This document shows positions 2,148 through 34,146 of a stretch of DNA of 64,000 nt, one piece after another. Position numbers and translations under genes: made by a program. The notes beneath the pieces are model-generated. The model saw nothing but the letters and a program-made list of their open reading frames with translations. It made no database searches and was not told the DNA's origin. The first letter of the stretch is position 1, and every line of letters begins with the position of its first letter. This DNA comes from Lepidodermella squamata (lineage: Eukaryota > Animalia > Gastrotricha), in assembly GCA_047495785.1 (NCBI GenBank), contig JBLDXI010000031.1:372001-436000 (forward strand), read 5' to 3'.

Positions 2148-2164
2148 ATTTCACCCGAAATCTA

Positions 2165-2563: not shown

Positions 2564-3549
2564 CGTTCGTGTTGCGACGTAAGGGACCGCCTGTACTAGT
2601 GCATATTTCTATATATCATTATACCGCTATCATTAACTGGGGAGCGGTTGCATCCCAAATTACTATGTTTGGTTCAAGGGCTATAAAATTGCCATTAGCT
2701 GCGATTGCTATCGTGCGTTCTTGGACTCTTGGAGAGAAAAGAGAAATTCAGCTTTTTCGCCTATCATTCCTATAATTCTTCAATTTTTTCACGCTTTCTT
2801 CTCTGGAATTCTTCGATTGCAGATTTAACAGGTAGCAAAAACGAGCTGCCGTGACCAATGAAAAACTATTATTATCCGTGTTTCGGTGCCGTAAATCTTT
2901 ATTTTCAATGCAGCGAAATAATTGAAAATGAACAAAGGAAATGAAACTAAGAGAACAATTCATCACACTTTGTTTAACAGAAATGGCGATAACAGGTTGA
3001 ATATATCGAAAGAGCCAGCACTCTGCAATAGTATAGTAGCGACCTTACGCCGTAATTTTCCATTTCCGATTCCCAATCCATATCCAATATCCAATCTTTA
3101 TCCAATCAGCTATAACTCAAGTGCCGAATTCGAGTAAAAGTTGAAGTATAATAATCCTAATCAACAATGCAGAATATAAAATTTAACACAGCAGCTAATA
3201 GGATGTACTTTACTACTTTAATAGCTGCGAGAGATATTGCAATAAGATTTTAATGAATTATTATTACGTATTTAGAAACGAGCCATTCTAAATTAAAAGT
3301 TCCTCTGATTTCTACGAAAAAGTATAGAATGATATTCATGCACATGTAATATTATTGGAAGTAGATCTCGCCCCAGGAAGATTTGGCGGATAAATCTTTG
3401 AATTAGGAAACAAGAGGTCTTCAAAGTTTTCTGAAAATGTATCACTTAAAACCGAAATGAACTAACAATTTTCGTTGACGGCGAAACTCCATTGGTTAAC
3501 TAATTAACTAAGTAACGATAACTAAATTGATAAGCCCCAGAAATGGCTT

Positions 3550-3710
3550 AGCGTCGTTGAATAACTCTGATTTGTGCATGTTTACGTCAGTGACAAGTAA
3601 AAGGTGATAGCAGAGTTTTTATGTGAACGAAGACGGAAGCAAACTTGTCACCCGTCAACTGTCTGTAACTGACGTGAACAAGCCCTAATCCGAGTTGTAT
3701 TCAACGACGC
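3550..3710. mobile_element. Small MITE/hairpin
   Basis: Imperfect inverted repeat gcgtcgttgaata...tattcaacgacgc flanked by TA; boundaries approximate. Confidence 0.55.
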
Positions 3711-4004
3711 TAACGACTACGGTACGACTACGGCGCAGTGATGGCGGTTCATTCTGCTTTGACTGCTATGGTTTAGCTTTTTTCTTCCATTTAAAATGTC
3801 TATATCTATTGGATACCAATTAAGTGTTAAATTTCAATACCGAGAGCAGATCAGATTTGTCTCCAAAAAGCTGCGCTTTGATTTAGGATCTAGCCTTGAC
3901 AAGCAGAACAAACCGCTCCATTGCTCCAGAAATCTACCCGTAAACCGTTCTCATCATAAAGTACGCGCCACTTATTTGCCTTCAATTACTCTGAAACTCT
4001 GAAA

Positions 4005-4497
4005 CAGTGTGGTCCACGGCCGGAAAATGGCGAGTCACCAACCGGAGTCAAAATTGGGCCAAAGAGTTAAAACCATTAAAACGCCGATAAACCAGTAAAT
4101 GTTACGTCTAAATATCACTCCAATTCCCGTTCTAGCTCGAAAATTTCTCTCTCTATATTCACCTGTCGCTGCAACTTTTCAGGGGGTTCGACTGGTTTTT
4201 AACAAAATTCGTCATTTTTGCGCCTTTGTAACTTGTAGAAAAATAGCTCCCTGCGAGCGAAGCGAGCTTCAGCTGAGGATATTTCTTCGACTTTTTGGAC
4301 TTTTTTGATGAGTGTGGAGTCAAAGCATCTCATTTTGGAGTCAAACTCAGAGCCGGAGTCAAGTTTAGCTAGGTTATTTGTGACTCTTTCCGGAGTCAAG
4401 CTCGGCTCAGTAATTAAAATAATCGGAGTCACACATGAGTAAAAAAAAATCCCAAAAGAGTCAAAATGGCTTGGGAGTCACACTTTGGACCACACTG
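4005..4497. mobile_element. hAT-type MITE
   Basis: TIR CAGTGTGGTCCA; 8-bp TSD ctctgaaa/ccctgaaa (1 mismatch); subterminal GGAGTCA repeats. Confidence 0.8.
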
Positions 4498-5809
4498 CCC
4501 TGAAAGTTATTCTGCATTCTCGCCATTAGATTGAAGTGCCGTAAGCATTCCTGATTGACCTTATTATAGTTAAGATTCCAGCTAAAATGATCAAGTGGAT
4601 GTGCATTGTAAATTATACTTCTGCGCATGATTGCTTTCTTTGATAACTACTGTTAGCCCGTGGCATTTTGCTCTTTGGCCGTCGGTTCAACACCATCAGA
4701 CTAAATGTGACGTACTATTTCATTAAGAAGTCCGCGCAAAAATCGTGAATCCCAAACTCAAATGGTGGGTCACGTTTTGTCGTATCATGCCAAGCGAGTT
4801 GCATGTCGAACATTTCTCGAATACAGCGGTTTCGTTGCTAATTGCTAATCATCAATCATCGCTAAATCGCTAACCAGATCACATTACCAAGGCAATCCGC
4901 TATCTTTCTTAGGATACAGAGATACAAGTCCTACTAGCAATTCTCGAATGAACTTCGTAAACTTTGGGTGATTCTACTATTGACCTCATGTGGCTGCGAG
5001 CTGCGAATCTGCTTCAGCGATTCCGCGAGCTTCGCGCAAGGTTGTAGTTCAGTTTGTCGCAACAGCTCAACTGCTCATATTTGATAAAATATGAAATGCG
5101 ATTAGAAAAATACGTGATCGCTTATTCATGCAATAAAATTTAAAAATATATCGAAATGCCTGTGAGCTGCGAGATAATGGAGAAGGATAACCACAAAAAA
5201 GTTTATAACTAATCGCGTAATAAGTGCTCTCTTGGCATTTTCATGATAGTTGAAAAATTGGCTCATAGTCCATACTTCCGTAATATGCATTTTTCGTGAT
5301 GATAACTGCATGGGTCGCATAAAATTAGGCTCCGGGAATGGGAAACTAAAAAGTAAGCCCATTCGAACGCAGACTCTGGTCATGTTTGAACAGTAAGTGG
5401 TGGATAGTCATGGTTCAACGTCACTATACAGAGAGAGTGCGAGAGAGAGACAGAGACTTTACCCTATGAGTTATGGATATTGATAGAATTGAATAATAAA
5501 AATTATATTATATATTATAATTATAAAATTGATAGAATTATCCTAGACTACGCTCGAAGGGAACGAAGGTGAAATCAAGAAGAGGAGGATAAATTTGGTT
5601 GATCTTAAGAATTTAGCCATGATAACGGAGAAATTGTAGTACGCATTCTGCATTCTGGTAGCGTTGCAACCGTTCGGTATCGGATGCGCCGCAATTAGGA
5701 TGCTATTACCCGCAAATAAAAAGTAGCTTATATTACCAGTACCAAGTATTTTATTACAAACAGCATGGAAGTACTGCCTAACGCGGTCTCTTACGTCGCA
5801 ACACGAACG

Positions 5810-6964
5810 ATATTTGTCACCGGTTTTCTCGGTTCCCAGTCGGAAATCAGTAGACCCAGAAATAACGGCATGAGCGAATAACGATCTATCAACCGTCATC
5901 GTGGAGATTCGATCACAGCTAGGCCGAGGTGGCCATTAAAACAGCCCAAACAGCTTTCAAATTTCACCTGGCGATTTAGGACCGAACAATCTGGGGTCAA
6001 CAAACCGGAGACAAAAATCTGGGGACGAGAATCTGGGGACGAGACTTTGGTGACAGAAAACTGCTGATACAACATTCTGCGGACGAACACCTAGGCCGAG
6101 GTGGCCATTAAAACAGCCCAAACAGCTTTCAAATTTCACCTGGCGATTTAGGACCGAACAATCTGGGGTCAACAAACCGGAGACAAAAATCTGGGGACGA
6201 GAATCTGGGGACGAGACTTTGGTGACAGAAAACTGCTGATACAACATTCTGCGGACGAACACCTGGGGAATGTGGAGCGAACAATAAGGGGACACCAAAC
6301 TGGGGACGAGAATCTGGGGACGAGACTTTGGTGACAGAAAACTGCTAATTCAACATTCTGGGGACGAACACCTCGGGAATGAGGACCGAACACTCTGGGG
6401 ACAACAATCTGGGGACAAAAAACTGGGGACAAAAATCTGGGGACGAGACTTTGGTGACAGAAAACTTGTTCCCAGAATGCTCGGTCCCCATTGTGTTGTC
6501 CCCAGATTTTTGTCACCCTTTTTCTCGGTCACCACTGTGTTGTCCCCAGATTTTTGTCACCCGTTTTCTCCGTCCCCACTGTGTTGTCCCCAGATAATTG
6601 TCACATGTTTGATGGGTCACTGATTCCACCGTTTGTCCCAAGAATGCTCGGGCCCCAATGTGTTGTCCCCAGATTTTTGTCACCCTTTTTCTCGGTCCCC
6701 ACTGTGTTGTCCCCAGATAATTGTCACGTTTGATGGGTCACTGATTCCACCGTTTGTCCCAAGAATGCTCGGTCCCCAATGTGTTGTCCCCAGAGTTTTG
6801 TCCCCAGAATGCTCGGTCCCCATTGTGTTGTCCCCAGTTTTCTTTTGTCACCCGTTTTCTCGGTTCCCAGTCGGAAATCAGTAGACCCAGAAATAACGGC
6901 ATGAGCGAATAACGATCTATCAACCGTCATCGTGGAGATTCGATCACAGCTAGGCCGAGGTGGC
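5810..6964. repeat. GGGGAC modular array, inverted relative to 1-1867
   Basis: Core copies start at 5835 and 6866 (offset 1031); local ~170-bp tandem duplication around 5919-6262. Confidence 0.9.
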
Positions 6965-7530
6965 TTAATTACTTGTTAATTAATTTCTAGATCTATAGCT
7001 CTTCTCAATTGATTTTTAGTTATTAAATACACGTCAGCTAGAAATAATTTGTGAAATCACTCAAGGCTCAATTTCGAATTCAGGCAGATCCGGGGTCACG
7101 TCCTACTTTTTTCTTGTATTTAATAATGAGGTGGAGTTTTTAATCCACCTTAATATATTGAAGCTATTTATTTTTATTTTCATGTTTGAACCCGCATCAA
7201 AGGCTGACTGATCCCCAGCGGAACCCGAAGTCGATCAGCTAGCGATTGAAGCCGGTGAAATTAAATCGCGACGAAACCTCGAAAATTTGAGCCAGTACAG
7301 TCGGTAATAATTTAACTAGCAAACCTTTCACTCCCGGCTTAATATTTCTTTATCTGAAAATGTCTATTAAATTAGGGTGAAATTATAACACACTATTTTC
7401 AGATGTTTGCTAAGCTTTCAATTTTCCAGAAAATTAATTGTTAATCTAAAATTTTTAGATGCAAAATTGAAGACGGCAATTTCGAACTTCAAAATGGCAA
7501 AAAATTATCAAGCGATTGCGGCTAATAAAT

Positions 7531-7706
7531 CAGTGTTTTTTTTAAGCAGTTTAACAGTTTAAATTTTAAACACCAAACGAGAAATTTTTAAACACCAAAA
7601 AGGGCGAAATTTGGCCGAAATAGCAAGAAAATCGGTCTTCACCCCCCAAAATTACACTCCAAAACCGCAAATTTAAACACCGAATCAATCCTTAAAAAAC
7701 ACGCTG
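7531..7706. mobile_element. Short MITE
   Basis: Imperfect TIR cagtgttttttttaag / cttaaaaaacacgctg; AATAAAT on both flanks. Confidence 0.55.
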
Positions 7707-8267
7707 AATAAATCGAGCAATTTTACGCATGGCTGAAATTCGATCAACGGTAAGAAAATGTTCAACTCTTATTCTCTCAAGTTTGAAATTGGCAATTGCT
7801 TTCAGACCTGAAAATTCAACTACTGATGCCCGAAATTTCAATTTTTCCTGCGTCGACAAATCGATTCTCGTCAACCCGAACGGTAACAACTTGAACCATG
7901 ATCAATTATTGGCGGCCTTTTAATTCAGCTATTGAAATTATATTAAATTATTTCTATCTCTTGCTTGAAAAATTGAATAAAATTCTAATTATTTTGCAGG
8001 CATGAAACGTGGCATGAAAAGTGGGCAATTCGCAAGCTGTAAGTCATGCAAGACAAGTCCCTGAAACTTCAATCCAATTTAAATATGAGAGGCGGTATGT
8101 ACTGATAGTGATAAAATTGATTGATTTTTGCTGCCAAATTTGATTGATTGATTATTGCGATATGATAATTAAATGAATAATAAATCAGGTACTTGAAATT
8201 CTCGCATTATTGGACCAACGGTATATCAGAAAGCACCTATATTGAGGAATACCTGGATGCCGGGGCC

Positions 8268-9075
8268 AGATTTGTACCTGACAAGGTCATGCTTAGACCG
8301 TAGGTGGACCCAAGCCATGATTCATTCAGCCATTTTTGTTACGATTCAATTATTTGCTAGATCTACTCTCGATCTATTTACACGTGTGTAGACCTATCGT
8401 CGATCTACACAGCTAGATCTACTTGCTCCCTATAGTGACCGTGGCTAGATCTACCCCAGTTGCAAAATTTGATCACGCTACGATCTATAGGGGCCTATCT
8501 AAATTAGGTCGAGTAGGTCTAGCTAGGTCTACTTTTTTCCGACTGGGTCCCCATTGTGTTGTCCCAGATAATTGTCACCTGTTTGATGGGTCACTGATTC
8601 CACCGTTTGTCCCAAGAATGCTCGGTCCCCAATGTGTTGTCCCCAGATTTTTGTCCCCAGAATGCTCGGGCCCCATTGTGTTGTTCCCAGATTTTTGTAA
8701 CCCGTTTTCTCGGTCTCCACTGTGTTGTCCCCAGATTATGTCACCTGTTTGGTGGGTCACTAATTCCACAGTTTGTCCCCAGAATGCTCGGGCCCCATTG
8801 TGTTGTTCCCAGATATTTGTCACCGGTTTTCTCGGTTCCCAGTCGGAAATCAGTAGACCCAGAAATAACGGCATGAGCGAATAACGATCTATCAACCGTC
8901 ATCGTGGAGATTCGATCACAGCTAGGCCGAGGTGGCCATTAAAACAGCCCAAACAGCTTTCAAATTTCACCTGGGGATTTAGGACCGAACAATCTGGGGT
9001 CAACAAACCGGGGACAAAAATCTGGGGACGAGACTTTGGTGACAGAAAACTGCTGATACAACATTCTGCGGACGA
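8268..9075. repeat. Inverted copy of ~1205-2147 (TAGATC segment + GGGGAC array + core)
   Basis: Reverse-complement match seen directly, with some array units missing. Confidence 0.88.
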
Positions 9076-9618
9076 TTCACGCTTTTTGGTAACTGAGGAA
9101 AGTAGAATAAATAAAGCTTTGATATTTCGAGAAGAACCCGGACTTGTCGAGTTAATCATTTAGGTATTTATTGGTTAACGGAAGCCCCTTTACATTGGTG
9201 GCAGTCGGTATTCTCGGAAATAAGTAAGTATTTGGTTCTTGTGCTCACACGAAGGCATGACCGCAGACATCACAGTAGCCAGATACATTTCACACACCGA
9301 GATTATCTTGGACGAACAGGGCTGGAAAAAGTGTTTTTCTTCCCACCAACGAACATAAAAATTCCCAAAATTTCCCAATTTTGGCGGGAATTTCATATCA
9401 GGAATTTCAGTGTTTATTTTACGTGCCGCGTAGTGATTTGTCAAGCAGGTGTCATTTTCAGCACAAAGTAAACAAATAATTGCTGTATTTCATCTCCAAA
9501 GTCATTAAGTTTAAAATATGTTTAGAACTTCTCAAATGGCCTTTTTGCATATAACTTTTCCCAAAATTTGCCAGAGAATTTTGCGACAGCTGATTTTTTT
9601 TTAAAGTCATTAATCGCA

Positions 9619-11418: not shown

Positions 11419-13320
11419 CGAAGCGGTTTTCTAAACGTGAGATTTTCAGGCATTCCGGCGGAAGCATAGTAGCGTATTGAGCCGAAGCGATGTGCAGCCT
11501 ATGCCCCCTCATTCAGTATTCGATGCATTCAAGGCGAATCCACTTTTCACAGATTTTTTAGTTCAAGACAGCGGGTTTCGCATTGGAATTAAAGCTTGAG
11601 CGAGTTAATTGCTGTGAACTCGAAATCTCCAAGTCCGACGAATCTTGACAGTTGGATACAATGTTCCAAGAATTTTTTCAACTATATTGAATTGAAAATT
11701 GAAACATACCTATGTCGGTCGACTCATTGTTTATTAAAATTTTAATAAACGTCTGAGCTTGTTTACTAAAATTTCAGATCTGAAGCTGGACCACAGTTCG
11801 TACCGCACAAAATGCTCTGCATTCTCTTAATTTGTATCGGAAAATCTAAAATAGGTGCTTGTCGGTGCACGTCAGCTACTCTCAATTAGCTTCCCAGATA
11901 ACTTTTTTCGTATAATTTTGTTTTGAAGTATCAAGGCATGGTACGCAGACGATGGTCCCCGCAATCGATTTGCCCCCTGCTAATCATCACGTTTTTGACA
12001 TTCAGTCGACAAAATTCAAAGCGAAATGAGTTCATATTGGACTGCAGTTTTCGAGTTTAGTACAAACTGTCAGTATTACTGAATTGCACGAATCACGCTG
12101 GAACTCGTTGTTATTATCAAATTTGTTGCAGAATTTTAACCTTTCACAAGCTGAACAATGAGAGTCAACTATTAGGTGTTCTTGCAAGCTGGTTTTAGTT
12201 TTGCCATGGCGAAGATTCCATTTCGAAGCCCGATGCCAAAAATTATCACTTCATCGGCATATGCGAACGAAACGCTTAGAAACACGACAAATAATCGAAA
12301 AATTATCAAGCTGATGTCGACCATCAACTACGCAAGTCCGCTATTCGCCCTTGGTGCAATGTGCACCGAATCGATGCGAATGGCTCTTGACAACATGCGG
12401 CAACTCCCGAACTTTCTCGAAGATTATGAAATCGTCATTGAACCCTACGAAGATTACGTAAGGTGGTAACAAGAAATTTTTATCGAATTTAGTTACCTTC
12501 CGTGTTTTCAGTGTGCGCGACAATTCACAGTTTCGGCATACGTCTCATTTCTTCAAAGGGCTATTCTACCAGGCAGTATCGCTTTCCCCCTGACTTTAGC
12601 CTCCTTTTGTCCAGGAAACAGTCACACTGGTATGATATCGGTACATCACAACGTTCTCCAAGTAAGAAATCACTTTTCATGAATTTCCATTTATGACTGA
12701 GACGTTTCTATTAGCTTACCGAAGTCAGCGCGGCTCCGGAAACCTACAACAACAGGCAGTTGTATCGAAACCTCATGATGCCATCTCCAAGTGCTGCCAT
12801 AGAATCAGTGGCCTGGTTCTGTTTGAAAATGGGCTGGACACGGCTTTTTATGTTTTCGGAGAACGTGGACTACGCTATCGAACACGAATCCAGGATCATC
12901 GCTGAATTCGACCGGTTCAATGTTACCTACTCGTTTCAATCAGTCAAAATACCTTTCCAAGAGGGTTTACCGCCCGATTTCGAGGCCCTAGAGAGAGGAA
13001 TTGGGGAACTAGCGGCTTTGAAGCCTAGGATCATGTTGTTTGAAATGACAATCTTCTCTCGAGTCGCATGCTGGCTGCATCGATATGGCATCTATGGCCC
13101 TAACTACGTCATCTTGATCACAACCGGAGGGTTATTTGAAGATAATGATTTTCTGAGGTTCATGCCTTGGTGTACCCCGCAAATGTTACGTGACGTTCTC
13201 CGAACCATCATTAGTTTCAGCTACTCGAATGTAATGAATAGTATGTCTGATGGCGGATTGTCTTACAAAGACTACACTGGCACGTCAGGCAAGGAATTCG
13301 AAGAAAATCTTAAACTAATT
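11419..13320 (+). repeat. Segmental duplicate of 62096-64000 (homology probably continues past the window edge)
   Basis: High identity with scattered substitutions from cgaagcggttttctaaacgtgag onward; ~11685-11775 is not homologous; includes an orphan copy (11450-11599) of the last exon of the GPCR at 59353-62276. Confidence 0.92.
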
Positions 13321-14834
13321 GTTGAAAGCCCCGAGAAGCAGCCTGTTTGGTTCTTTTGGAGGTCATTTTGCTACGACAACGTCATAGCAGCTGGCTACGT
13401 CCTCAATGCGACTGAGACTGTTCTGAAATCGCGTAATCAGTCGCTTATTGACTGGACGATGCCGTCGCAAAGGTTTCAAAATAACGGGGGCGAGATTGTC
13501 GAAATTATGAAATCAATTCTCGACAAAATGCAACTTCGCACGTTCCTGGGCGAGGTGACATTCGATCACAGAATGAGGTTCGCCTACTCACAGATCCAGG
13601 AAAGTGACACTGAAAAAAGTTATTCCAATCAACAGCTGCCGAGACTTGTTGCTATGCCTGTGGCTATTTACAACGTTGATGAGAACAACGCGAAATCTAT
13701 TGAATTTGGACCACACAATTTCATCTGGAAAACATGGAATGGAAAGGCGCCTGAAGATCGATTGAAAGTTGTACAGATTCAAAAACCAGTTTTAGACCAA
13801 GCATCATACGGAGCACTGAAAGGCATCGGATGCATCGAATGTTTGCTTCTAATCGGTCTTCTTATTGGAACTATAAGGTCTATGCTACTTGAAGGGCGCA
13901 GAACTCGCGAAGCTAAGTGTTGTAGTTTGTCCATGATTTTCTCCGATTTGCTGCTTTTATGCAACGTCCTCTGCCAGCCTCAGGATTCGAATGAATCGAC
14001 CTTATGTTCAACCTGCATGCTTTCTTATGCATTTCTCACGCTCGGTCTGTCAGGAATTTTCTTCAGTTTCATGGCGAATTTCGAATTGGTTGCAAAATCT
14101 GTCAAAATTGTCGCGAGTAGAGGAAGACTTCAGTCTTCTACAGCTAAAGAATTGCAAACTCGAGGGAGCAGTGTTTATTTCAGAGAGTCTTCGGCAATTG
14201 AAGCGAGGATATCGGTGATACCTGCCAACCAAGTTTCCAGCTTGAAGAGGAGGTTTCTCACATTAGGATTCGGCCAAACTGGGCTGTCTTCCATGCTACT
14301 TCTAGCTTGGTTTATAGTTAGCCCGTTTGAAGTTAATGTCCGAACAGTGGACTATATTGAAGATCCTAGGAACCCTGCCCTGGCTTATCTCTACTTAAGG
14401 AAAGAATGCTCTATCGCAGGGAATCAAGTTGCCTATGGCATTGTCGGAGTTTTAGCCGCCATACCTTCAACATTCATCCTGAGGTCTTGCCAGCTCATTC
14501 TTGGACTTGATCGAGTAAGTTTTTAAATAAGTTACACTAAACCTTAATTAATCTCGTCCTTGATTAGACGAAGAGCTCTAGAAGCAAGTTGATGTCAAAT
14601 TGTTTCTACGGCAGTGTCATACTAATTGGATGTGCCTGTCTGGTATGTGGCGCCATCTTTAGCGACGATCAAGCTCATCTTCGCATTTCGCTGTCCGCTT
14701 TCGTTCTGATTCTGCCGCTTATCAACTCAGCGCCGTTATTGCAAGAGCTTATAGGCGGGATGAAGAAAACTACTGAGTTACGTGAATCCGTTACGGCGTC
14801 GCGGCGCAGGACAATTTCGTCGCGCTCAGTTTGA
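12158..14834 (+). pseudogene. Divergent GABA-B-like class C GPCR (Venus flytrap + 7TM), copy B1 with nonsense codon in the signal peptide
   Basis: Exons 12158-12457, 12512-12661, 12715-14514, 14568-14834 with GT-AG introns; seven hydrophobic segments. TAG at 12173-12175 where paralog 62833 has TGG; 6-bp deletion (LY) near 12772. Could still initiate at ATG 12206. Confidence 0.75.
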
Positions 14835-15490
14835 AAGGAGCCGCAATTATATATTATCATGGTGAATCATGTTAGGAGTAAGGATCTATTTTAGTGATGC
14901 ATACGAAGACCATCCATCAACGACCATACTTTAAAGATTGAAAGAAAGACCTGTAAAGCGAGTATACGACTTCGATGATTTTAAAGTTTTTGGACTATAT
15001 GTTACCGACTCGCCAAGTAAATAAATTTGAAACATATCACACGACATCATACGATCTCATGGCGTAAAAATATAGACCTCTTTCCAGCGTAGAATCTATG
15101 AACGATTTCGCTCTTGATTTAGGAAATGTTTCAATGAGGAAACCGGGCAAAATGTGGAAGCAGCGGCTATAGCATCAGGTGCCGTTAAATGCGGAAACTT
15201 ATCGATCGATAGTAACAAATGAACAATGAACCATTCGAATTTCTTGAGTTGGCACTGACATGAATATCAAATTTAACACCCATCTGGTGACTAAATCTAT
15301 TTGCTATAATTTTTCATAGCATAGAAACATTGCATGATGCATTGGATAAGCTTGTTGGAATGGAAATATATTGGTTCATAGACGTTAGCCGCCTCCAAGT
15401 TTCCGACTGCTTTATATGTCTAATGTTTAGCAAAGCAACTTTGTCGAATTTGCGCTCCGTTTAAATTATTTAGAGTCTGCTTTGATAATA

Positions 15491-15741
15491 ATGTCAATAA
15501 GGATTATTACAGCCCTCAGCTTCATTTCAGTCATTGCTGGGGAATCAATTAAAAGAAAGGAACTTGTTGTATTATCGCTACATCCATTCGCGGGTTACGA
15601 GCCTCTAACCTTCCAACACTGCCGCTCTGTCCAGCAAATGGTGGTTGACGATGTGAATAAATGCAGCGACATTCTACCCGAATATAAATTGACATTTGAC
15701 TTCCGAAATGAAGGTGCGGCTGGAATGCTGGCTGTCCGAAG
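15491..15741 (+). pseudogene. Truncated first exon of a third class C GPCR-like gene (gene C)
   Basis: Signal peptide MSIRIITALSFISVIAG then Venus-flytrap-like DDVNKCSDILPEYKLTF; runs into unrelated TACAC/GTGT-rich sequence at ~15742. Confidence 0.6.
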
Positions 15742-16681
15742 CTACGGCTGTGCTATTACGTGTGCTGTACATTCATGTGTACGCATATTGCATAGGCTAG
15801 TATACACGCGCGTACACGCTCGTACACGCGCATCTATGCGAATATAACTGTAAACAGTGCGCGGGTAAGGAGAGCCGCGCATTTGCCGCGGGTTATTCAT
15901 AGTGCGCGAGTTCTGAAACACCCTGTACGAGGCGATCACGATTCGACATTTCAAACTGTAAGGTTATAAATGACGTCTAAAAGAGATGCAAAGAAAAAAT
16001 ACAACGTTAATTACAGGTAAGGTCCCTAGATCACAGATCTGAAATCAGATTTTAAAATTCAAGACTGTTTTGAGCAAGCTTGGCTAAGAACCTGGATTTT
16101 GGACGCTTTTTCACCTTAACAGGCGACGGGTGCTCTCGGATGCGTTGAACAAATTCCCGGGTATTTTCTTTTTCAAAATCTAAATGATAATATTTATTTA
16201 CATTGATTTTCTTCACTATAATGTATTATTTCAGCACTGGTTATTATTCATGTGAACTTTGATTAGCGGGGTTTTTTGAACGCATTCATTTACCGTTACT
16301 TGGAAACAGCTCAGCTGTTGTAGCTGATAACCTGCACTTCGCTATAACGATTAAGCTTGAAGCAGGGGGGATGGTTTAAATTTTTGGGGGCGCGACTTTT
16401 CGCGAAGAGAAGGTAAACCCCCTCATCCCCCCGCTATTTCCTACACTGCGTACTGCATTGGGGACAGTCTTACCGACTGTGACAAAAGGCCTGCTATTAG
16501 GGACAGGCATACCCATAATCTTAGTCTGGATTTGCAGTGTCAAAGTCCACACATTTTTTGCTTCATGATGTGTGGTCGGGGCGGTGGGGTGGTCGATTAG
16601 GTCGGGAATTTTTTTATCATCTAATAATTTCTCGTGAGCATTATTTCCCCATTATTTACTTATTTAAATATTCTTTTTTTC

Positions 16682-17751
16682 ATGACCAAAACGCGGAAAA
16701 TCGCAGCAAAGGAAGCGGCAATTCAAGCCACAAAAGATGCGGCAATTCTTGAGGAGAAAGATCGCAATCGCAAGCAGAGCGATGCGCGGCGAAAGAGTGC
16801 GCGAGAAAACGAGACAAGCACACGAAGAAAGGCCGCTCCTGTTGCTGAAGAGGTCGCGTTGAAGTTGCCGCGGGTAGCCAAACAGCGAAAAACTGGCGAA
16901 GCGGAAGGTGTTAGCGGCCAAGAAATGGAGGTGGAGCGTAATGGAGTTGAAGGCGGAGATGATCACGAGGTCGATGGTCATGATGATGGCCAGGATGGTG
17001 CCGTGGGTGATGCTGTTGTTGATGGCGAGGAAGATGCATCGGAAGATGACGAGGACAATGACGAGGATGAAGATGAGAGCGATGACGAGGATGACGACGG
17101 GGGTGATGGCGAGGACGATAGCGAGGATGATGGCGAGGACGATGCTGATGAGCAACATGAGCCCGATGAACGTGAACCAATCGAGCCGACCCAATCGACT
17201 AAATCCAATCGAGCGGTTTCACGTGATATGCGCAAGAAGAGCGGTAAATCAGGCAATTCGTTTGCTCCAGGACCGTTGTTCTTCAGCGTCCCTGACAGCG
17301 ACCGAGTCGATCTAGATTCAAGTTATGCTTTCAAAATGTCATGGAACCATATACAAAATGTGGCGAGCAGCTATTCAAATTGTAAGCCTTTGTTTTGCTG
17401 TGTAAATTGTGTAAAATAGTGTTTAATCTCACAGCTAAATCAACGAAGAGCAGAACCGAGTGGAGTCCCGATGAAAGAAATCGTATTCGGCATTGTTTCG
17501 CCTATGTTGTCAGGTCTGGGATAAAATTTGAAAGTGTTACAGCTAAAATGATCGAATTTTGGATGGCAAAGACACCAACAGATCGTGACCTCGATAAAGA
17601 GTTGGGTAGAACAACTGGCGCCATTGCCCGTCAAATACCTGTGATCCACCGCCTTATAAGAGCGGGCGTGTTTCGTTTTCAGTGGGACGCTAAGGACAAG
17701 TTCCGTTTGTTCTATAATGCTGATCGTGATGGTTATGAGGTTGACAAGTAA
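16682..17751 (+). CDS. ~338-aa protein: basic N-terminus, long D/E tract, C-terminal Myb/SANT-like domain (transposon ORF2)
   Basis: Exons 16682-17381 and 17435-17751 join in frame across a GT-AG intron; RTEWSPDERNRI...ELGRTTGAIARQI resembles a Myb/SANT helix-turn-helix; AATAAA signals follow. Domain call is by eye. Confidence 0.7.
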
Positions 17752-17918
17752 AGGTTACGCTGTGATCTTTTGCCTCCTGCCTATGATAAATCAAAGTTGA
17801 GGAAGAAATAAAGCTACGTCGACAAAGATTAATGCGGAAATAAAATGATGACATGATGACATAGTTCAAACTTTTTATTTATCAAATGAAACACAGTTTC
17901 TAGGTACTTCAAATATTT

Positions 17919-20646
17919 TCAAATCAGCTTCAAATTTTCCTTCATGTTTTCGATTTTCAAAATCTGGCACGGTTTGGAGTATTTGTTTGAAATTGAACAG
18001 TCCATCGTTCTGCGTCTTTTCTTGTTGCTCAACTCAATGCTCTCAGTGCAGAGTTTTGCCAAATCGACCCCTTTCTCCAGAAGCTCGTAAACTTGGCACC
18101 CGAGCAAATGAGCGTAAGAAGTAACTGGTCCAATAGTTCGATGCCATATCTTTTCGTAGCAGCTAGCCATAATTTTACTTGGGACTAATACTGTATGGAC
18201 TCGACACTGCTAGCATCTCTCCATTAAAATCCTGCTGGACGCAAAAAACCGTCCGACGAATCGTGATCGTAAAGTCGTTCAAAAATCGCGAGAAAAAAAT
18301 CGCAAAATGACGTTTACGAGAACCTTTTTTACGCATGCGCCCATTACATTGGGAAGAATCGAAGTCTCGTCCTGTCGGTACCGTATCACACCTTACCTTT
18401 ATTTCGGATTGCATTTAATTTTACATAGCCGAATTCTACATGAGAGGAACTTTGTAACGGTATAAACCATGACCTATTGGGTGCTGAATTTACTTAGCTA
18501 AATTGACGTTTCTAACAGAATGAGGAAAAATTTCTAAAAATAGAACCGAATTATTTACGCTGATTCATTCAGAAAAAATACGAGAGAATATTCATGACTC
18601 ATTGAATAATTTTTTGCCATTTTTTTATTTCCTCAAAAATGGCAATTTCTGTGTAAAATTCAAAGTAAAATCACAGCAAAGTCATAAAATTTTGAATTTG
18701 GCACTGTTGCAAAGATCGTGACTTGAGCTATCGATATTCATAAAAATTAAGTCTGTATCTATCGGTATGACTTGCCCATACGGTACTCTCGTGAAACTTG
18801 TCCTGTTTTTGGCTTTGTAACGGGCGGATGCGTAAAAATGGTGCCTTTAATGCGTAAAAAACACATTTTTTCATGTGATTTTCTCGCATCAAAATTATTG
18901 ATTTTTTTCCTGTCCAGCAGAAAAGTGGCTAGTGTCGAGTCCATACAGTATTAGTCCCAAGTAATTTTAGCTGTTGACGTCACATGGTTCATCTCGATGT
19001 CCCGAAATACCATCAAGGTGGATAGACACAAGGTTCGCAAATCCTTTAATGAAGACAGCAGTAGCTTCTGACGGCTGCTTTGAGACTGAATAGATCCCCT
19101 GCGAGTGTTACGACCTGAAGTTTTGACTGAGTTGAGGAAGTTAGCCGGTAGGAAAAATGACTCGGATAGAGGCTTTCCAATCATTCTCTTGGCTAATTCA
19201 GCAAATGCCTAGTTTAAATTTCAGTTAGGAACTAATTTATTTCATATAACACAAAATTAGGGTCATACCTTGGAAATGCCGTAGTGATTGGAATTTTTGA
19301 TAAGCACACTAATGACACCTCGTTTTGTGGCTTTGGTCTCGATAGAAAATTTTGGCGTTTTCGAGTTGGTTTTCAAGAAAGAAACAAGATCGTTCATAGC
19401 ACCGCGGAACCCATGGCTTTTCAGAACACGTATGATCTATTGTTAAATAGAATATTGAACTTTCAAGTTGTTGGAAGGAATACCTACTTTAGCAATAAGT
19501 TGACGAGCAATATTGACCTTCATGTGGAAGAAATCAGGTAAAATCAGAAGTTTGTCAGGACCCAAACGAATCATCGGGGCAAAATCTTTCGACCAACCAA
19601 GCTTTCCTTTAAATGAATTTTCGTATGAGTCGAATCGGCGTTTCCGCGAAAGGACATTGAGCTTTTTAATATTCCTTTCACAGATTACGCAACGAAAATC
19701 GGCGCCCTGGTGACCACAGCCAAAGAGCTTGACAGTAGCTGGGTAGTCACAGCAAACCAATAATCGAAAATCGTAAGAATCATCCCCGATCTTCAAGCCA
19801 TCTCGAACGATATTCGAGAGCTCGCCGATGGTTGGCTGTAAAAACTTCCTGAACATCTCGGAAGATTCGCTTCCCTGGTACATTGACAGCTGATATTCAC
19901 CAGCGCAGTCCACTTTGGCCTTTGACTTAGCAGCACAAATGTATGAACTGACTGTTGCATCTGCCATGCTCGTCCTAGCTGCCATGCCATCCACCTGTTC
20001 AATTTGACTTTGCCCTAGCAAGGACCATATGTAATTTTGATTTACCTGAAGCCGTAGATCATTAACAACGTCTTTTTCCAAGTCGCCTCGAACAATCATT
20101 TTTTTAACGATTGAATCTACCGAGCGATATGCGCCTAATCCGCGGTGAGTTGATGTTATTGGGTGAAGCATAGCAAGGCGCTTTCGAACCCCATAGAAGT
20201 TTTCTTTTGTTACACTTTGGTAGCCAATTTCATTTTTAATGGTCATGAGGGTGGAAGCATTAATGCCGTGTTTCAAGCCGAGGCGAACCAAACTAAACAT
20301 AATAATCAAGCTGTAATATTACCAGTTGACAATTCAACCTTAACCTCTGCGTTTTTTCTCCAGCCTGTTCCTGTTTAGACTCGTTTTTCAATGGCCATTC
20401 CGACGCAACCACGCCTATGTTTTCGTATTCTACAACTAATTGGGCTTTTTTAATAACAGCCCCGTCCATAGCTGCATTGAAAGGCCACGCCACAGGTAAC
20501 GACTGCAAGAAAAGATTCTGCACCACCTCAGCTCGATGTACAGCTGATCGGTTGGAAATTGATGAAACGGGGCCCTTCATTCGAGACAAGCTGCGCCTAG
20601 CTGCATCTTGATCAACTATGGTCGGCTCAGAGTAAGTCGCCGGCAT
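17919..20646 (-). CDS. RAG1-core/Transib-like DDE transposase (~579 aa), interrupted by a MITE
   Basis: Exons 20646-20345, 20310-20046, 19994-19488, 19436-19269, 19208-18962 + 18169-17919 total 1740 nt and stay in frame once the MITE and one TSD are removed. Motifs: VDGM, CCDYPA...CVIC, PDFFH, GPVTSYAHLLGCQVYELLEKG..LAKLCTESIELSNKKRRR. Confidence 0.8.
18178..18961. mobile_element. 784-bp MITE with 8-bp TSD inside the transposase
   Basis: 31-bp perfect TIR CTTGGGACTAATACTGTATGGACTCGACACT; TAATTTTA at 18170-18177 and 18962-18969. Confidence 0.92.
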
Positions 20647-20969
20647 GTGATGAAAGAAATTCTGGAAACCTATAGAATCAATAATAATTACTTCTGCAAA
20701 TGTTCAGATTGATTCAAAGATTTTAATTCATATTTGTATGATAGTAATTTATTACCCAAAAAAGCTCTTTTTTTTATTTAGAAAATCCAATAAATGACGG
20801 AAGATGAGAAAAACAATTTTTTTCATGCTAATAATGACCACGGTCACCGACCGCTCCGACCGCTCCGACCGCTCCGACCACCGCCACCACCATGACGCAT
20901 TGAACAGCAAAAAAAGTGGACTTTGACACTGCAAATCCAGACTAAGATGATTGGTGACAAGGATTCGTA

Positions 20970-21330
20970 ATGGGGACATCAGTCGGCATGTTGTGCGACG
21001 ACAGGTGACAAGAATCAGCCATTGGGGAAAGTCTTGACTGGGGACAACAGTCGGCCATTGGGGACAGGCTTCTCAACAGCTGACAAGAATCCATTTGGGA
21101 CAGTCATTGGGGCCATTGGGCATTGGGGACAGTCTTACCGACTTGGGGCAAAAGGTCTGCTATTGGGGACATGCCTCTTTACACGAGACAAAATCAGCAA
21201 TTGGGGACAGTCTGACCGACTTGGGACAAAAGGTCTGCCATTGGGAGAAGAATATTCGCTACAAGAATCGGCTATTGATGATATGCTTCTTGACTGTGGA
21301 CAACAGTCGGCAATTTGGGACAAGGATTCG
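20970..21330 (+). repeat. ATTGGGGACA-type repeat cluster
   Basis: Multiple cattggggacag(tcttaccgact) units; also at 16456-16510, 21615-21658 and 22543-22565. Confidence 0.8.
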
Positions 21331-28127: not shown

Positions 28128-30019
28128 GTCAAAATACCTTTCCAAGAGGGTTTACCGCCCGATTTCGAGGCCCTAGAGAGAGGAATTGGGGAACTAGCGG
28201 CTTTGAAGCCTAGGATCATGTTGTTTGAAATGACAATCTTCTCTCGAGTCGCATGCTGGCTGCATCGATATGGCATCTATGGCCCTAACTACGTCATCTT
28301 GATCACAACCGGAGGGTTATTTGAAGATAATGATTTTCTGAGGTTCATGCCTTGGTGTACCCCGCAAATGTTACGTGACGTTCTCCGAACCATCATTAGT
28401 TTCAGCTACTCGAATGTAATGAATAGTATGTCTGATGGCGGATTGTCTTACAAAGACTACACTGGCACGTCAGGCAAGGAATTCGAAGAAAATCTTAAAC
28501 TAATTGTTGAAAGCCCCGAGAAGCAGCCTGTTTGGTTCTTTTGGAGGTCATTTTGCTACGACAACGTCATAGCAGCTGGCTACGTCCTCAATGCGACTGA
28601 GACTGTTCTGAAATCGCGTAATCAGTCGCTTATTGACTGGACGATGCCGTCGCAAAGGTTTCAAAATAACGGGGGCGAGATTGTCGAAATTATGAAATCA
28701 ATTCTCGACAAAATGCAACTTCGCACGTTCCTGGGCGAGGTGACATTCGATCACAGAATGAGGTTCGCCTACTCACAGATCCAGGAAAGTGACACTGAAA
28801 AAAGTTATTCCAATCAACAGCTGCCGAGACTTGTTGCTATGCCTGTGGCTATTTACAACGTTGATGAGAACAACGCGAAATCTATTGAATTTGGACCACA
28901 CAATTTCATCTGGAAAACATGGAATGGAAAGGCGCCTGAAGATCGATTGAAAGTTGTACAGATTCAAAAACCAGTTTTAGACCAAGCATCATACGGAGCA
29001 CTGAAAGGCATCGGATGCATCGAATGTTTGCTTCTAATCGGTCTTCTTATTGGAACTATAAGGTCTATGCTACTTGAAGGGCGCAGAACTCGCGAAGCTA
29101 AGTGTTGTAGTTTGTCCATGATTTTCTCCGATTTGCTGCTTTTATGCAACGTCCTCTGCCAGCCTCAGGATTCGAATGAATCGACCTTATGTTCAACCTG
29201 CATGCTTTCTTATGCATTTCTCACGCTCGGTCTGTCAGGAATTTTCTTCAGTTTCATGGCGAATTTCGAATTGGTTGCAAAATCTGTCAAAATTGTCGCG
29301 AGTAGAGGAAGACTTCAGTCTTCTACAGCTAAAGAATTGCAAACTCGAGGGAGCAGTGTTTATTTCAGAGAGTCTTCGGCAATTGAAGCGAGGATATCGG
29401 TGATACCTGCCAACCAAGTTTCCAGCTTGAAGAGGAGGTTTCTCACATTAGGATTCGGCCAAACTGGGCTGTCTTCCATGCTACTTCTAGCTTGGTTTAT
29501 AGTTAGCCCGTTTGAAGTTAATGTCCGAACAGTGGACTATATTGAAGATCCTAGGAACCCTGCCCTGGCTTATCTCTACTTAAGGAAAGAATGCTCTATC
29601 GCAGGGAATCAAGTTGCCTATGGCATTGTCGGAGTTTTAGCCGCCATACCTTCAACATTCATCCTGAGGTCTTGCCAGCTCATTCTTGGACTTGATCGAG
29701 TAAGTTTTTAAATAAGTTACACTAAACCTTAATTAATCTCGTCCTTGATTAGACGAAGAGCTCTAGAAGCAAGTTGATGTCAAATTGTTTCTACGGCAGT
29801 GTCATACTAATTGGATGTGCCTGTCTGGTATGTGGCGCCATCTTTAGCGACGATCAAGCTCATCTTCGCATTTCGCTGTCCGCTTTCGTTCTGATTCTGC
29901 CGCTTATCAACTCAGCGCCGTTATTGCAAGAGCTTATAGGCGGGATGAAGAAAACTACTGAGTTACGTGAATCCGTTACGGCGTCGCGGCGCAGGACAAT
30001 TTCGTCGCGCTCAGTTTGA
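28128..30019 (+). pseudogene. 5'-truncated class C GPCR copy B2
   Basis: Same as 12943-14834; lacks exons 1-2 and the start of exon 3. Confidence 0.85.
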
Positions 30020-30675
30020 AAGGAGCCGCAATTATATATTATCATGGTGAATCATGTTAGGAGTAAGGATCTATTTTAGTGATGCATACGAAGACCATCC
30101 ATCAACGACCATACTTTAAAGATTGAAAGAAAGACCTGTAAAGCGAGTATACGACTTCGATGATTTTAAAGTTTTTGGACTATATGTTACCGACTCGCCA
30201 AGTAAATAAATTTGAAACATATCACACGACATCATACGATCTCATGGCGTAAAAATATAGACCTCTTTCCAGCGTAGAATCTATGAACGATTTCGCTCTT
30301 GATTTAGGAAATGTTTCAATGAGGAAACCGGGCAAAATGTGGAAGCAGCGGCTATAGCATCAGGTGCCGTTAAATGCGGAAACTTATCGATCGATAGTAA
30401 CAAATGAACAATGAACCATTCGAATTTCTTGAGTTGGCACTGACATGAATATCAAATTTAACACCCATCTGGTGACTAAATCTATTTGCTATAATTTTTC
30501 ATAGCATAGAAACATTGCATGATGCATTGGATAAGCTTGTTGGAATGGAAATATATTGGTTCATAGACGTTAGCCGCCTCCAAGTTTCCGACTGCTTTAT
30601 ATGTCTAATGTTTAGCAAAGCAACTTTGTCGAATTTGCGCTCCGTTTAAATTATTTAGAGTCTGCTTTGATAATA

Positions 30676-30926
30676 ATGTCAATAAGGATTATTACAGCCC
30701 TCAGCTTCATTTCAGTCATTGCTGGGGAATCAATTAAAAGAAAGGAACTTGTTGTATTATCGCTACATCCATTCGCGGGTTACGAGCCTCTAACCTTCCA
30801 ACACTGCCGCTCTGTCCAGCAAATGGTGGTTGACGATGTGAATAAATGCAGCGACATTCTACCCGAATATAAATTGACATTTGACTTCCGAAATGAAGGT
30901 GCGGCTGGAATGCTGGCTGTCCGAAG
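30676..30926 (+). pseudogene. Second copy of truncated GPCR gene C exon
   Basis: Duplicate of 15491-15741. Confidence 0.6.
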
Positions 30927-31866
30927 CTACGGCTGTGCTATTACGTGTGCTGTACATTCATGTGTACGCATATTGCATAGGCTAGTATACACGCGCGTAC
31001 ACGCTCGTACACGCGCATCTATGCGAATATAACTGTAAACAGTGCGCGGGTAAGGAGAGCCGCGCATTTGCCGCGGGTTATTCATAGTGCGCGAGTTCTG
31101 AAACACCCTGTACGAGGCGATCACGATTCGACATTTCAAACTGTAAGGTTATAAATGACGTCTAAAAGAGATGCAAAGAAAAAATACAACGTTAATTACA
31201 GGTAAGGTCCCTAGATCACAGATCTGAAATCAGATTTTAAAATTCAAGACTGTTTTGAGCAAGCTTGGCTAAGAACCTGGATTTTGGACGCTTTTTCACC
31301 TTAACAGGCGACGGGTGCTCTCGGATGCGTTGAACAAATTCCCGGGTATTTTCTTTTTCAAAATCTAAATGATAATATTTATTTACATTGATTTTCTTCA
31401 CTATAATGTATTATTTCAGCACTGGTTATTATTCATGTGAACTTTGATTAGCGGGGTTTTTTGAACGCATTCATTTACCGTTACTTGGAAACAGCTCAGC
31501 TGTTGTAGCTGATAACCTGCACTTCGCTATAACGATTAAGCTTGAAGCAGGGGGGATGGTTTAAATTTTTGGGGGCGCGACTTTTCGCGAAGAGAAGGTA
31601 AACCCCCTCATCCCCCCGCTATTTCCTACACTGCGTACTGCATTGGGGACAGTCTTACCGACTGTGACAAAAGGCCTGCTATTAGGGACAGGCATACCCA
31701 TAATCTTAGTCTGGATTTGCAGTGTCAAAGTCCACACATTTTTTGCTTCATGATGTGTGGTCGGGGCGGTGGGGTGGTCGATTAGGTCGGGAATTTTTTT
31801 ATCATCTAATAATTTCTCGTGAGCATTATTTCCCCATTATTTACTTATTTAAATATTCTTTTTTTC

Positions 31867-32936
31867 ATGACCAAAACGCGGAAAATCGCAGCAAAGGAAG
31901 CGGCAATTCAAGCCACAAAAGATGCGGCAATTCTTGAGGAGAAAGATCGCAATCGCAAGCAGAGCGATGCGCGGCGAAAGAGTGCGCGAGAAAACGAGAC
32001 AAGCACACGAAGAAAGGCCGCTCCTGTTGCTGAAGAGGTCGCGTTGAAGTTGCCGCGGGTAGCCAAACAGCGAAAAACTGGCGAAGCGGAAGGTGTTAGC
32101 GGCCAAGAAATGGAGGTGGAGCGTAATGGAGTTGAAGGCGGAGATGATCACGAGGTCGATGGTCATGATGATGGCCAGGATGGTGCCGTGGGTGATGCTG
32201 TTGTTGATGGCGAGGAAGATGCATCGGAAGATGACGAGGACAATGACGAGGATGAAGATGAGAGCGATGACGAGGATGACGACGGGGGTGATGGCGAGGA
32301 CGATAGCGAGGATGATGGCGAGGACGATGCTGATGAGCAACATGAGCCCGATGAACGTGAACCAATCGAGCCGACCCAATCGACTAAATCCAATCGAGCG
32401 GTTTCACGTGATATGCGCAAGAAGAGCGGTAAATCAGGCAATTCGTTTGCTCCAGGACCGTTGTTCTTCAGCGTCCCTGACAGCGACCGAGTCGATCTAG
32501 ATTCAAGTTATGCTTTCAAAATGTCATGGAACCATATACAAAATGTGGCGAGCAGCTATTCAAATTGTAAGCCTTTGTTTTGCTGTGTAAATTGTGTAAA
32601 ATAGTGTTTAATCTCACAGCTAAATCAACGAAGAGCAGAACCGAGTGGAGTCCCGATGAAAGAAATCGTATTCGGCATTGTTTCGCCTATGTTGTCAGGT
32701 CTGGGATAAAATTTGAAAGTGTTACAGCTAAAATGATCGAATTTTGGATGGCAAAGACACCAACAGATCGTGACCTCGATAAAGAGTTGGGTAGAACAAC
32801 TGGCGCCATTGCCCGTCAAATACCTGTGATCCACCGCCTTATAAGAGCGGGCGTGTTTCGTTTTCAGTGGGACGCTAAGGACAAGTTCCGTTTGTTCTAT
32901 AATGCTGATCGTGATGGTTATGAGGTTGACAAGTAA
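31867..32936 (+). CDS. Second copy of the acidic/Myb-like transposon ORF2
   Basis: Duplicate of 16682-17751, preceded by the left inverted repeat (31703-31735). Confidence 0.7.
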
Positions 32937-33103
32937 AGGTTACGCTGTGATCTTTTGCCTCCTGCCTATGATAAATCAAAGTTGAGGAAGAAATAAAGCT
33001 ACGTCGACAAAGATTAATGCGGAAATAAAATGATGACATGATGACATAGTTCAAACTTTTTATTTATCAAATGAAACACAGTTTCTAGGTACTTCAAATA
33101 TTT

Positions 33104-33355
33104 TCAAATCAGCTTCAAATTTTCCTTCATGTTTTCGATTTTCAAAATCTGGCACGGTTTGGAGTATTTGTTTGAAATTGAACAGTCCATCGTTCTGCGT
33201 CTTTTCTTGTTGCTCAACTCAATGCTCTCAGTGCAGAGTTTTGCCAAATCGACCCCTTTCTCCAGAAGCTCGTAAACTTGGCACCCGAGCAAATGAGCGT
33301 AAGAAGTAACTGGTCCAATAGTTCGATGCCATATCTTTTCGTAGCAGCTAGCCAT
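33104..33355 (-). pseudogene. C-terminal fragment of the RAG1-like transposase
   Basis: Duplicate of 17919-18170; upstream exons are absent. Confidence 0.8.
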
Positions 33356-33362
33356 AATTTTA

Positions 33363-34146
33363 CTTGGGACTAATACTGTATGGACTCGACACTGCTAGCA
33401 TCTCTCCATTAAAATCCTGCTGGACGCAAAAAACCGTCCGACGAATCGTGATCGTAAAGTCGTTCAAAAATCGCGAGAAAAAAATCGCAAAATGACGTTT
33501 ACGAGAACCTTTTTTACGCATGCGCCCATTACATTGGGAAGAATCGAAGTCTCGTCCTGTCGGTACCGTATCACACCTTACCTTTATTTCGGATTGCATT
33601 TAATTTTACATAGCCGAATTCTACATGAGAGGAACTTTGTAACGGTATAAACCATGACCTATTGGGTGCTGAATTTACTTAGCTAAATTGACGTTTCTAA
33701 CAGAATGAGGAAAAATTTCTAAAAATAGAACCGAATTATTTACGCTGATTCATTCAGAAAAAATACGAGAGAATATTCATGACTCATTGAATAATTTTTT
33801 GCCATTTTTTTATTTCCTCAAAAATGGCAATTTCTGTGTAAAATTCAAAGTAAAATCACAGCAAAGTCATAAAATTTTGAATTTGGCACTGTTGCAAAGA
33901 TCGTGACTTGAGCTATCGATATTCATAAAAATTAAGTCTGTATCTATCGGTATGACTTGCCCATACGGTACTCTCGTGAAACTTGTCCTGTTTTTGGCTT
34001 TGTAACGGGCGGATGCGTAAAAATGGTGCCTTTAATGCGTAAAAAACACATTTTTTCATGTGATTTTCTCGCATCAAAATTATTGATTTTTTTCCTGTCC
34101 AGCAGAAAAGTGGCTAGTGTCGAGTCCATACAGTATTAGTCCCAAG
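33363..34146. mobile_element. Copy of the 784-bp MITE (right TSD absent)
   Basis: Both TIRs present; left flank TAATTTTA, right flank gttttttc. Confidence 0.9.

Follow-up and report, generated by a model that had tools for sequence, protein, structure and literature searches.

Which lineage of cut-and-paste transposons does the two-gene element in this stretch of Lepidodermella squamata DNA belong to, and does its RAG1-like transposase make it a relative of the RAG1-RAG2 pair? The stretch (hereafter the window, 64,000 nt; coordinates are window positions on the forward strand unless another locus is named) has a G+C content of about 42% and very short introns and is eukaryotic DNA; the canonical nematode leader SL1 was not found in the genome. 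Within it, a transposase gene and a second gene, here called ORF2 (open reading frame 2), lie between terminal inverted repeats. The original prediction had read them as a RAG1-core-like transposon with a partner other than RAG2 and considered that it might be an undescribed, possibly intermediate, two-gene branch of the RAG1/Transib/CMC (CACTA-Mirage-Chapaev) lineage. We consider it likely that positions 16517-20949 hold a decayed member of a recently active family of cut-and-paste elements about 3.64 kb long, and that this family forms a separate and seemingly uncatalogued lineage of the wider CMCT clade (CACTA/EnSpm-Mirage-Chapaev-Transib).

The outer bounds were set by comparing the flanks of four copies. 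When the left end of the element was used to search the window's own assembly of 121 Mb, three further copies turned up on other contigs (L021, L022 and L023). They are 3,641-3,645 bp long and 99.2-99.9% identical, their insertion sites differ, and each has a 2-bp duplication of its own. These are the kind of copies that the original prediction had proposed to look for in order to define the termini: They are free of the miniature inverted-repeat transposable element (MITE) that splits the last transposase exon in the window, and both reading frames are open in all three. The resulting span of 4,433 bp, which shrinks to 3,641 bp once the MITE and one of the two copies of its target duplication are subtracted, replaces the slightly wider 16511-20956 proposed before and is bordered on both sides by the dinucleotide AT. 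The predicted perfect inverted repeat of 33 bp is present and can be prolonged to 47 nt at 89% identity. Across the family, the termini are 34-bp inverted repeats that start with CA and finish with TG, reading CATC..GATG in L021-L023 (in a longer reading CATCT..AGATG), while the window copy has A as its first base where these three have C. With CATC..GATG ends, a 2-bp duplication is perfect in four of four copies (AT, TT, GA and TT); a 3-bp duplication, perfect in two of the four, was rejected. A sister family on contig C1 (3,510 bp; transposase 65% identical) has kept the core of the repeat, ends in CAT..ATG (CATT..AATG) and is flanked by AC, so that a 2-bp target duplication of varied sequence is perfect in all five insertions. 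Clusters of the motif GGTCGG lie 55-100 bp inside both termini in mirrored orientation, three at the left and four at the right.

The MITE, which the original prediction had removed on paper, is a real nested insertion of 784 bp, since L021-L023 lack exactly 18178-18961 and are joined precisely at TAATTTTA, the sequence that flanks the insertion in the window at 18170-18177 and 18962-18969. Removing it together with four GT-AG introns gives a transposase of 579 aa without an internal stop, and the catalytic codons fall where they had been placed (D191 at 19991-19989, D272 at 19748-19746 and E542 at 18035-18033). A 51-nt segment at 20045-19995 reads open in frame; we call it an intron because its 17 codons are missing from all 13 homologues that cover this point. 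The remaining junctions match breaks between high-scoring segment pairs of tblastn searches in paralogues. An earlier model with three introns and 596 aa was replaced when the paralogue alignment revealed the in-frame intron. The second spliced gene converges on the transposase gene with 167 bp between the two stop codons, which confirms the predicted tail-to-tail layout.

The positions D191, D272, C291-x2-C294, H517-x4-H522 and E542 are conserved in two paralogue alignments (A1 and A2), with the C(2)C pair at +19/+22 from the second Asp and the H-x4-H motif of the last exon followed 19 residues later by an invariant Glu. We modelled the large exon with AlphaFold2 from a 16-sequence alignment (the model still holds the 17 intron-encoded residues) and obtained a core with predicted local distance difference test (pLDDT) values of 84-97. 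In a Foldseek search of the PDB, the top 49 matches were all RAG1, BbRAGL or HzTransib, with E-values from 1.7e-5. Alignment with VIA-align gave Z-scores of 12.8 for RAG1 (238 of 274 residues, RAG1 residues about 469-859), 10.3 for BbRAGL and 8-8.9 for HzTransib, and the next unrelated fold, a P-element transposase, reached 4.9. The match to RAG1 takes in the RNase H domain, the segment that precedes it and the zinc site. The predicted structure thus shows the anticipated RAG1-like fold, and by this model the transposase is a DDE (Asp-Asp-Glu) enzyme with a RAG1-like core and a zinc site made of C291/C294 and H517/H522.

How much this fold says about ancestry is another matter. No CMC transposase structure was among the PDB matches, so RAG1 and Transib were the sole solved members of the wider group that could be matched at all. 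Among predicted structures, the matches were about equal, with template modelling (TM) scores of 0.68 for a DUF1280-bearing cluster, 0.58-0.67 for RAG1 clusters and 0.62 for a Transposase_21 cluster; the RAG1-type fold is therefore not discriminating. The description of the protein as RAG1-core-like is apt insofar as its fold goes far beyond a generic RNase H domain and its D/D/C(2)C/H(4)H/E order is that of RAG1, but these features are clade-wide and do not distinguish it.

ORF2 encodes 338 aa, made up of low-complexity sequence and the 100-aa C-terminal domain, with a 12-nt period detected by Tandem Repeats Finder at 17021-17144. Its expression was seen in a public run (X1) that behaves as complementary DNA (cDNA) and contains a loose end that we take to be a SMART-type adaptor. 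Contigs from this run span the whole of ORF2, and one of them skips exactly the 53-nt intron with GT..AG borders on the ORF2 strand, so that the proposed check of the splice junctions by RNA sequencing succeeded for ORF2 and gave no junctions for the transposase, whose exons are essentially uncovered. Other X1 contigs lie over L021 1000-1243 (corresponding to window 20709-20952) at the transposase-side end of the element, with none over the transposase coding exons, and "opposite strand" joints occur within the other end of the element; read-through, transcripts that derive from the ends or an artefact of repeats may account for these observations. As predicted, the partner is not RAG2-like: Its C-terminal domain is modelled at pLDDT 90 as five helices and a beta hairpin, and searches with ORF2 gave no match to kelch or any other Pfam family, no database homologue and no language-model lead. 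Foldseek found no PDB match for this domain and reached a TM score of at most 0.41 in the structure atlas.

None of the five diverged sister families that we compared (L031/L032, L033, L034, L035 and L036-L038) has its transposase without ORF2, an arrangement that would have spoken against a two-component system. In each, the ORF2 domain (31-60% identity) lies downstream of the transposase (45-67% identity) on the opposite strand. ORF2 is thus a conserved, transcribed, spliced and family-specific partner of the transposase. It may serve the transposase as a helper. That it is instead a passenger gene, captured or selfish, or a factor that regulates or represses transposition we hold to be unlikely but the most serious of the alternatives. 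Its expression in run X1, where the transposase is not expressed, would suit such a role, as would the lack of a recognisable DNA-binding family and its absence from more distant relatives. At one of these, about 30% identical, a 206-aa ankyrin-repeat-like ORF lies convergent downstream at the position that ORF2 has in the present family (L041 3745-4365, minus strand). Against a passenger speaks that position, orientation and C-terminal domain have been kept across five families with transposases at 45-67% identity, the pattern expected for a co-evolving cofactor.

Table 1. Features of the transposon in window coordinates, from left to right
Feature	Positions	Strand	Basis or remark
Left target-site duplication, AT	16515..16516	.	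Flanks of four copies
Whole transposon	16517..20949	.	Comparison of copies and flanks
Left arm of the 33-bp terminal inverted repeat	16518..16550	+	
Left subterminal cluster, three GGTCG(G) motifs	16573..16605	+	Mirrored cluster at the other end
ORF2 exon 1: basic N-terminus, then long Asp/Glu-rich stretch	16682..17381	+	cDNA contigs of run X1
ORF2 intron, 53 nt, GT..AG	17382..17434	+	Skipped in X1 contig (L021 3725 to 3779)
ORF2 exon 2: conserved 100-aa helical domain with beta hairpin, stop	17435..17751	+	
Transposase last exon, distal part: H517, Q522, E539, E542, stop	17919..18169	-	
Nested MITE splitting the last transposase exon	18178..18961	.	39-bp terminal repeats, 8-bp duplication TAATTTTA
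Transposase last exon, proximal part	18962..19208	-	Contiguous with 18169-17919 in L021-L023
Transposase exon 4	19269..19436	-	Breaks between paralogue segment pairs
Transposase exon 3: D191, D272, C291-x2-C294	19488..19994	-	Modelled at pLDDT 84-97
In-frame GT..AG intron, 51 nt, just before the first catalytic Asp	19995..20045	-	Absent from homologues
Transposase exon 2: matches the part of RAG1 ahead of the RNase H domain	20046..20310	-	Structural alignment
Transposase exon 1: 100 aa without Cys or a recognised domain	20345..20646	-	
Right subterminal repeat CCGACCGCT x 3.7, reverse complement of GGTCGG	20847..20879	+	
Right arm of the 33-bp terminal inverted repeat; G at 20949 closes the element	20916..20948	-	
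Right target-site duplication, AT	20950..20951	.	

The placement of the family starts from the CMCT clade as described by Kojima in 2025, in which C(2)C and H(3-4)H motifs are common throughout, termini are mostly CA..TG, duplications measure 2-5 bp, and Plavaka, ESTA and Lanisha are also included (PMC12730594). The family shows all three traits: the motifs (with Gln in place of H522 in the window copy), CA..TG termini (in L021-L023 and the C1 family; the first base is A in the window) and a 2-bp duplication in five of five insertions. The idea that RAG1-like features set the element apart is not supported, given that its motifs, termini and duplications are found across the clade (PMC12730594) and that Transposase_21 and DUF1280 models match its fold equally well.

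Within the clade, sequence searches give direction more than decision. Database searches were run exon by exon rather than with the spliced 579-aa protein. A phmmer search of 1.8 billion representative proteins yielded seven fragments (from metagenome contigs where checked), and a profile search of a 5.8-billion protein set yielded two, both from metagenome contigs; a large set of relatives at 26-67% identity resides in the element's own genome. Three Pfam families serve as landmarks, Transposase_21 standing for CACTA, DUF1258 for Mirage and DUF1280 for Chapaev (PMC3985635). Transposase_21 was matched by 9 of 16 family members at 16-22.6 bits compared with a curated cut-off of 28.6, and these matches always span the helix before the second Asp, a D-[YF]-P-A motif and the C(2)C pair. 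DUF1280 was faintly matched by three distant paralogues (E >=0.037), the window's own protein and subfamily not among them. DUF1258 was matched by none of the 16 members at E <=1, and its matches in the genome fall at loci outside this transposon family. The RAG1 family PF12940 gave no match with the exons at E <=10 and none with the 16 family members or the genome at E <=1, and PDB sequence searches that started from the single protein or from the A1 and A2 profiles returned no RAG1 and nothing meaningful. At the level of sequence, the affinities of the family thus appear to lie solely on the CACTA side, below threshold.

Could the element then simply be an ordinary member of a catalogued CMC family, such as a Mirage or EnSpm entry of Repbase, so that only its annotation would be new? 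The genome is rich in CMC elements, two-gene CACTA elements are classical, and both the sub-threshold Transposase_21 matches and a 2-bp duplication, the length known from Mirage, would fit. Likeness to CACTA/EnSpm consists of the sole repeated Pfam match, short subterminal repeats at both ends, a second gene and the C(2)C/H(4)H motifs. Plant CACTA elements encode the transposase TnpD and the DNA-binding protein TnpA, and the En/Spm genes come from one transcript, whereas the genes here are separate and convergent and ORF2 has no detectable similarity to anything. Moreover, the best Transposase_21 score of 22.6 bits stays below the gathering threshold of 28.6, the ends are CATC rather than CACTA/CACTG, and the duplication is 2 bp rather than 3. 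With Mirage, the family shares a CMC-type transposase, the 2-bp duplication and a small-animal host, but DUF1258 matches other loci of the genome and no family member. Its hidden Markov models (HMMs) also gave no match at E <=1 to CACTA-like or Mirage-like ORFs of its own genome. Together with just seven fragmentary relatives among 1.8 billion representative proteins and an ORF2 that has none, these differences make membership in a catalogued family improbable in our view.

Chapaev elements, which have been grouped with Transib and described with a Cys-rich N-terminal "Chapa" zinc-finger domain (PMC4411706), offer the best predicted-structure match through the DUF1280 cluster at TM 0.68. The sequence matches to DUF1280 at E >=0.037 only and the absence of any Cys, and so of a Chapa domain, in the first 100 residues set the family apart from them. 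PlavakaB, a fungal CMCT lineage, has termini CATCA..TGATG and 2- or 3-bp duplications (PMC12730594) and resembles the CATCT..AGATG ends and 2-bp duplication found here, in a comparison that involves 4-5 bases and a published description; this resemblance may be chance or a clade-wide trait. A family that shows the traits of the CMCT clade and falls short of the Transib/RAG-specific as well as the CACTA, Mirage and Chapaev thresholds is best seen as a separate CMCT lineage. "Undescribed two-gene branch of the RAG1/Transib/CMC lineage" is to that extent a fair description, and its "intermediate" or specifically RAG-related character goes beyond what the data show.

A reading with larger consequences would place the element truly within the Transib/RAG-like lineage, or as its sister, so that a RAG1L-type transposase works with another partner in place of RAG2L; if true, this would bear directly on the origin of the RAG1-RAG2 pair. 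Among solved structures, RAG1 matches best by a wide margin, over the segment that precedes the RNase H domain as well as over this domain and the zinc site, and the language-model neighbours of both the core and the last exon are RAG1 clusters. ProtoRAG likewise has two convergent genes inside inverted repeats, and RAG1 shows the same D/D/C(2)C/H(4)H/E order with equal spacings, the C(2)C at +19/+22 after the second Asp and the Glu at the same distance from H(4)H. However, RAG1 and Transib are the only clade members with solved structures to compare, and predicted Transposase_21 and DUF1280 structures match equally well. Neither the exons nor the paralogues nor the genome match PF12940, and PDB profiles miss RAG1. 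Kapitonov and Jurka reportedly described Transib/RAG in 2005 with a 5-bp duplication and heptamer-like CAC termini, whereas the duplication here is 2 bp in five of five insertions and the ends read CATCTTAG. RAG-like elements further differ in having a kelch propeller rather than a small helical domain as partner, and the transposase here is without an N-terminal zinc-finger or Cys-rich region. The shared motifs, finally, are those of the whole clade (PMC12730594). We therefore regard this reading as rather improbable, slightly more so than membership in a catalogued family.

Much the same low expectation attaches to a variant in which the family is a deep, unnamed CMCT branch nearer to Chapaev/Transib/RAG1 than to CACTA/Mirage, with ORF2 as an obligatory cofactor. 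It would amount to an independent or ancestral-type two-component system around a RAG1-fold transposase and would offer a direct test of how a RAG1-like enzyme becomes dependent on a second subunit. Harbinger elements, with a transposase and a Myb/SANT-like DNA-binding protein, are the best-known animal two-gene layout. A PIF/Harbinger-type origin, to which the two genes and a small helical domain with weak Myb-like/homeodomain fold matches might point, is nevertheless refuted by the RAG1/CMCT fold and zinc motifs of the transposase, is further opposed by the absence of any Harbinger-type Pfam match even at E <=10 and by varied 2-bp duplications instead of the canonical 3 bp (PMC12730594), and is extremely improbable.

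Several observations weigh against our preferred reading of a separate CMCT lineage with a helper protein. Its placement draws on indirect signals from fold and Pfam, and its novelty was judged from searches of Pfam, the PDB and representative protein sets. No Pfam family reaches its curated threshold with the transposase, and in hhalign comparisons with an own-genome CACTA-like ORF (E 2.3e-4) and an own-genome DUF1258/Mirage-like ORF (E 5.4e-4, 68 columns), the second Asp and C(2)C line up correctly but weakly, at probabilities of 44% and 30%, respectively, so the position within the clade depends on a weak sequence signal. In language-model space, the first neighbours of the core are RAG1 clusters at 0.95 (the DUF1280-bearing cluster also scores 0.95), and for the last exon RAG1_ZnH2 comes first among the named clusters (0.92, with low recognition). 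The transposase exons have essentially no coverage in X1, a single run, and its four introns are consequently placed by homology. As for ORF2, the best VIA-align rows for its domain are homeodomain, Myb-like and trihelix DNA binders at Z <=4.5, so that its likeness to DNA binders is a hint and not a finding. Relatives of about 30% identity (L039-L041) have no ORF2-like domain within 1 kb downstream, in a group (26-36% identity) whose architecture was seen in part only. That ORF2 acts as a helper and binds the subterminal repeats is something we infer by analogy.

The transposase presumably pairs the inverted repeats, cleaves at the CA/TG termini and integrates with a 2-bp stagger, as the DDE enzymes of the clade do. 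The ORF2 protein may act as a family-specific helper in end recognition or assembly, comparable to TnpA of CACTA or the Myb-like protein of Harbinger. The GGTCGG clusters, which recall the subterminal repeats of CACTA elements, are putative binding sites, probably for the ORF2 protein or else for the transposase.

The window copy itself is decayed. Its transposase carries five private amino-acid changes, among them H522Q at a position where His is invariant in the seven other aligned sequences and found in all relatives. With the MITE, these private changes and the altered terminal base, the copy is non-autonomous debris of an intact family: Judged from its sequence, it is unable to supply transposase, and its ORF2 is still intact and unchanged. 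It would be movable only with transposase from an intact copy, and the mutated terminal base may hamper even such assisted mobility.

The MITE belongs to a family dispersed in the same genome, where at least 10 full-length copies, 88-100% identical, occur beside dozens of fragments; by the length of its 8-bp duplication, it is hAT-like, and it is non-autonomous. An exact duplication of 6,019 bp (12943-18961 and 28128-34146) takes in flanking sequence together with the transposon's left half and the MITE and stops precisely at the outer end of the MITE (18961 and 34146). The second copy runs into unrelated sequence without the TAATTTTA duplication, which suggests a MITE-mediated rearrangement or an assembly artefact. 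Two further loci, L024 (contig C48, 3001-3314) and L025 (contig C10, 6846-7162), resemble the element over its left 315 bp alone (87-88% identity), a stretch that holds the first 54 codons of ORF2, before they diverge, and are probably deletion derivatives or a related subfamily. Degenerate repeats of 36-40 bp, whose units resemble ATTGGGGACAGTCTTACCGACTTGGG, form an array around the transposon at 16400-16516 and 20952-21330, with Tandem Repeats Finder calls at 21000-21071 and 21122-21245. Elsewhere, a 1.9-kb direct repeat of 92% identity (11419-13319 and 62096-64000) reaches the end of the window, and positions 1-9100 are densely packed with nested repeats, direct as well as inverted, that are 300-650 bp long and 81-99.8% identical (for example, 1574-2147 and 8841-8268 at 99.8%).

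The family does not speak for a new origin of RAG. Its interest lies rather within a clade in which the links between CACTA, Mirage, Chapaev and Transib-RAG1 rest mainly on a few shared motifs. The window copy records how one of its members decays, by a nested MITE and the loss of a zinc ligand. The family as a whole is a practical model, being compact and recently active and having intact copies, a well-predicted RAG1-type core, clear ends and an expressed partner, and could serve to study the way in which CMCT enzymes cleave and join DNA and the part that a second subunit plays.

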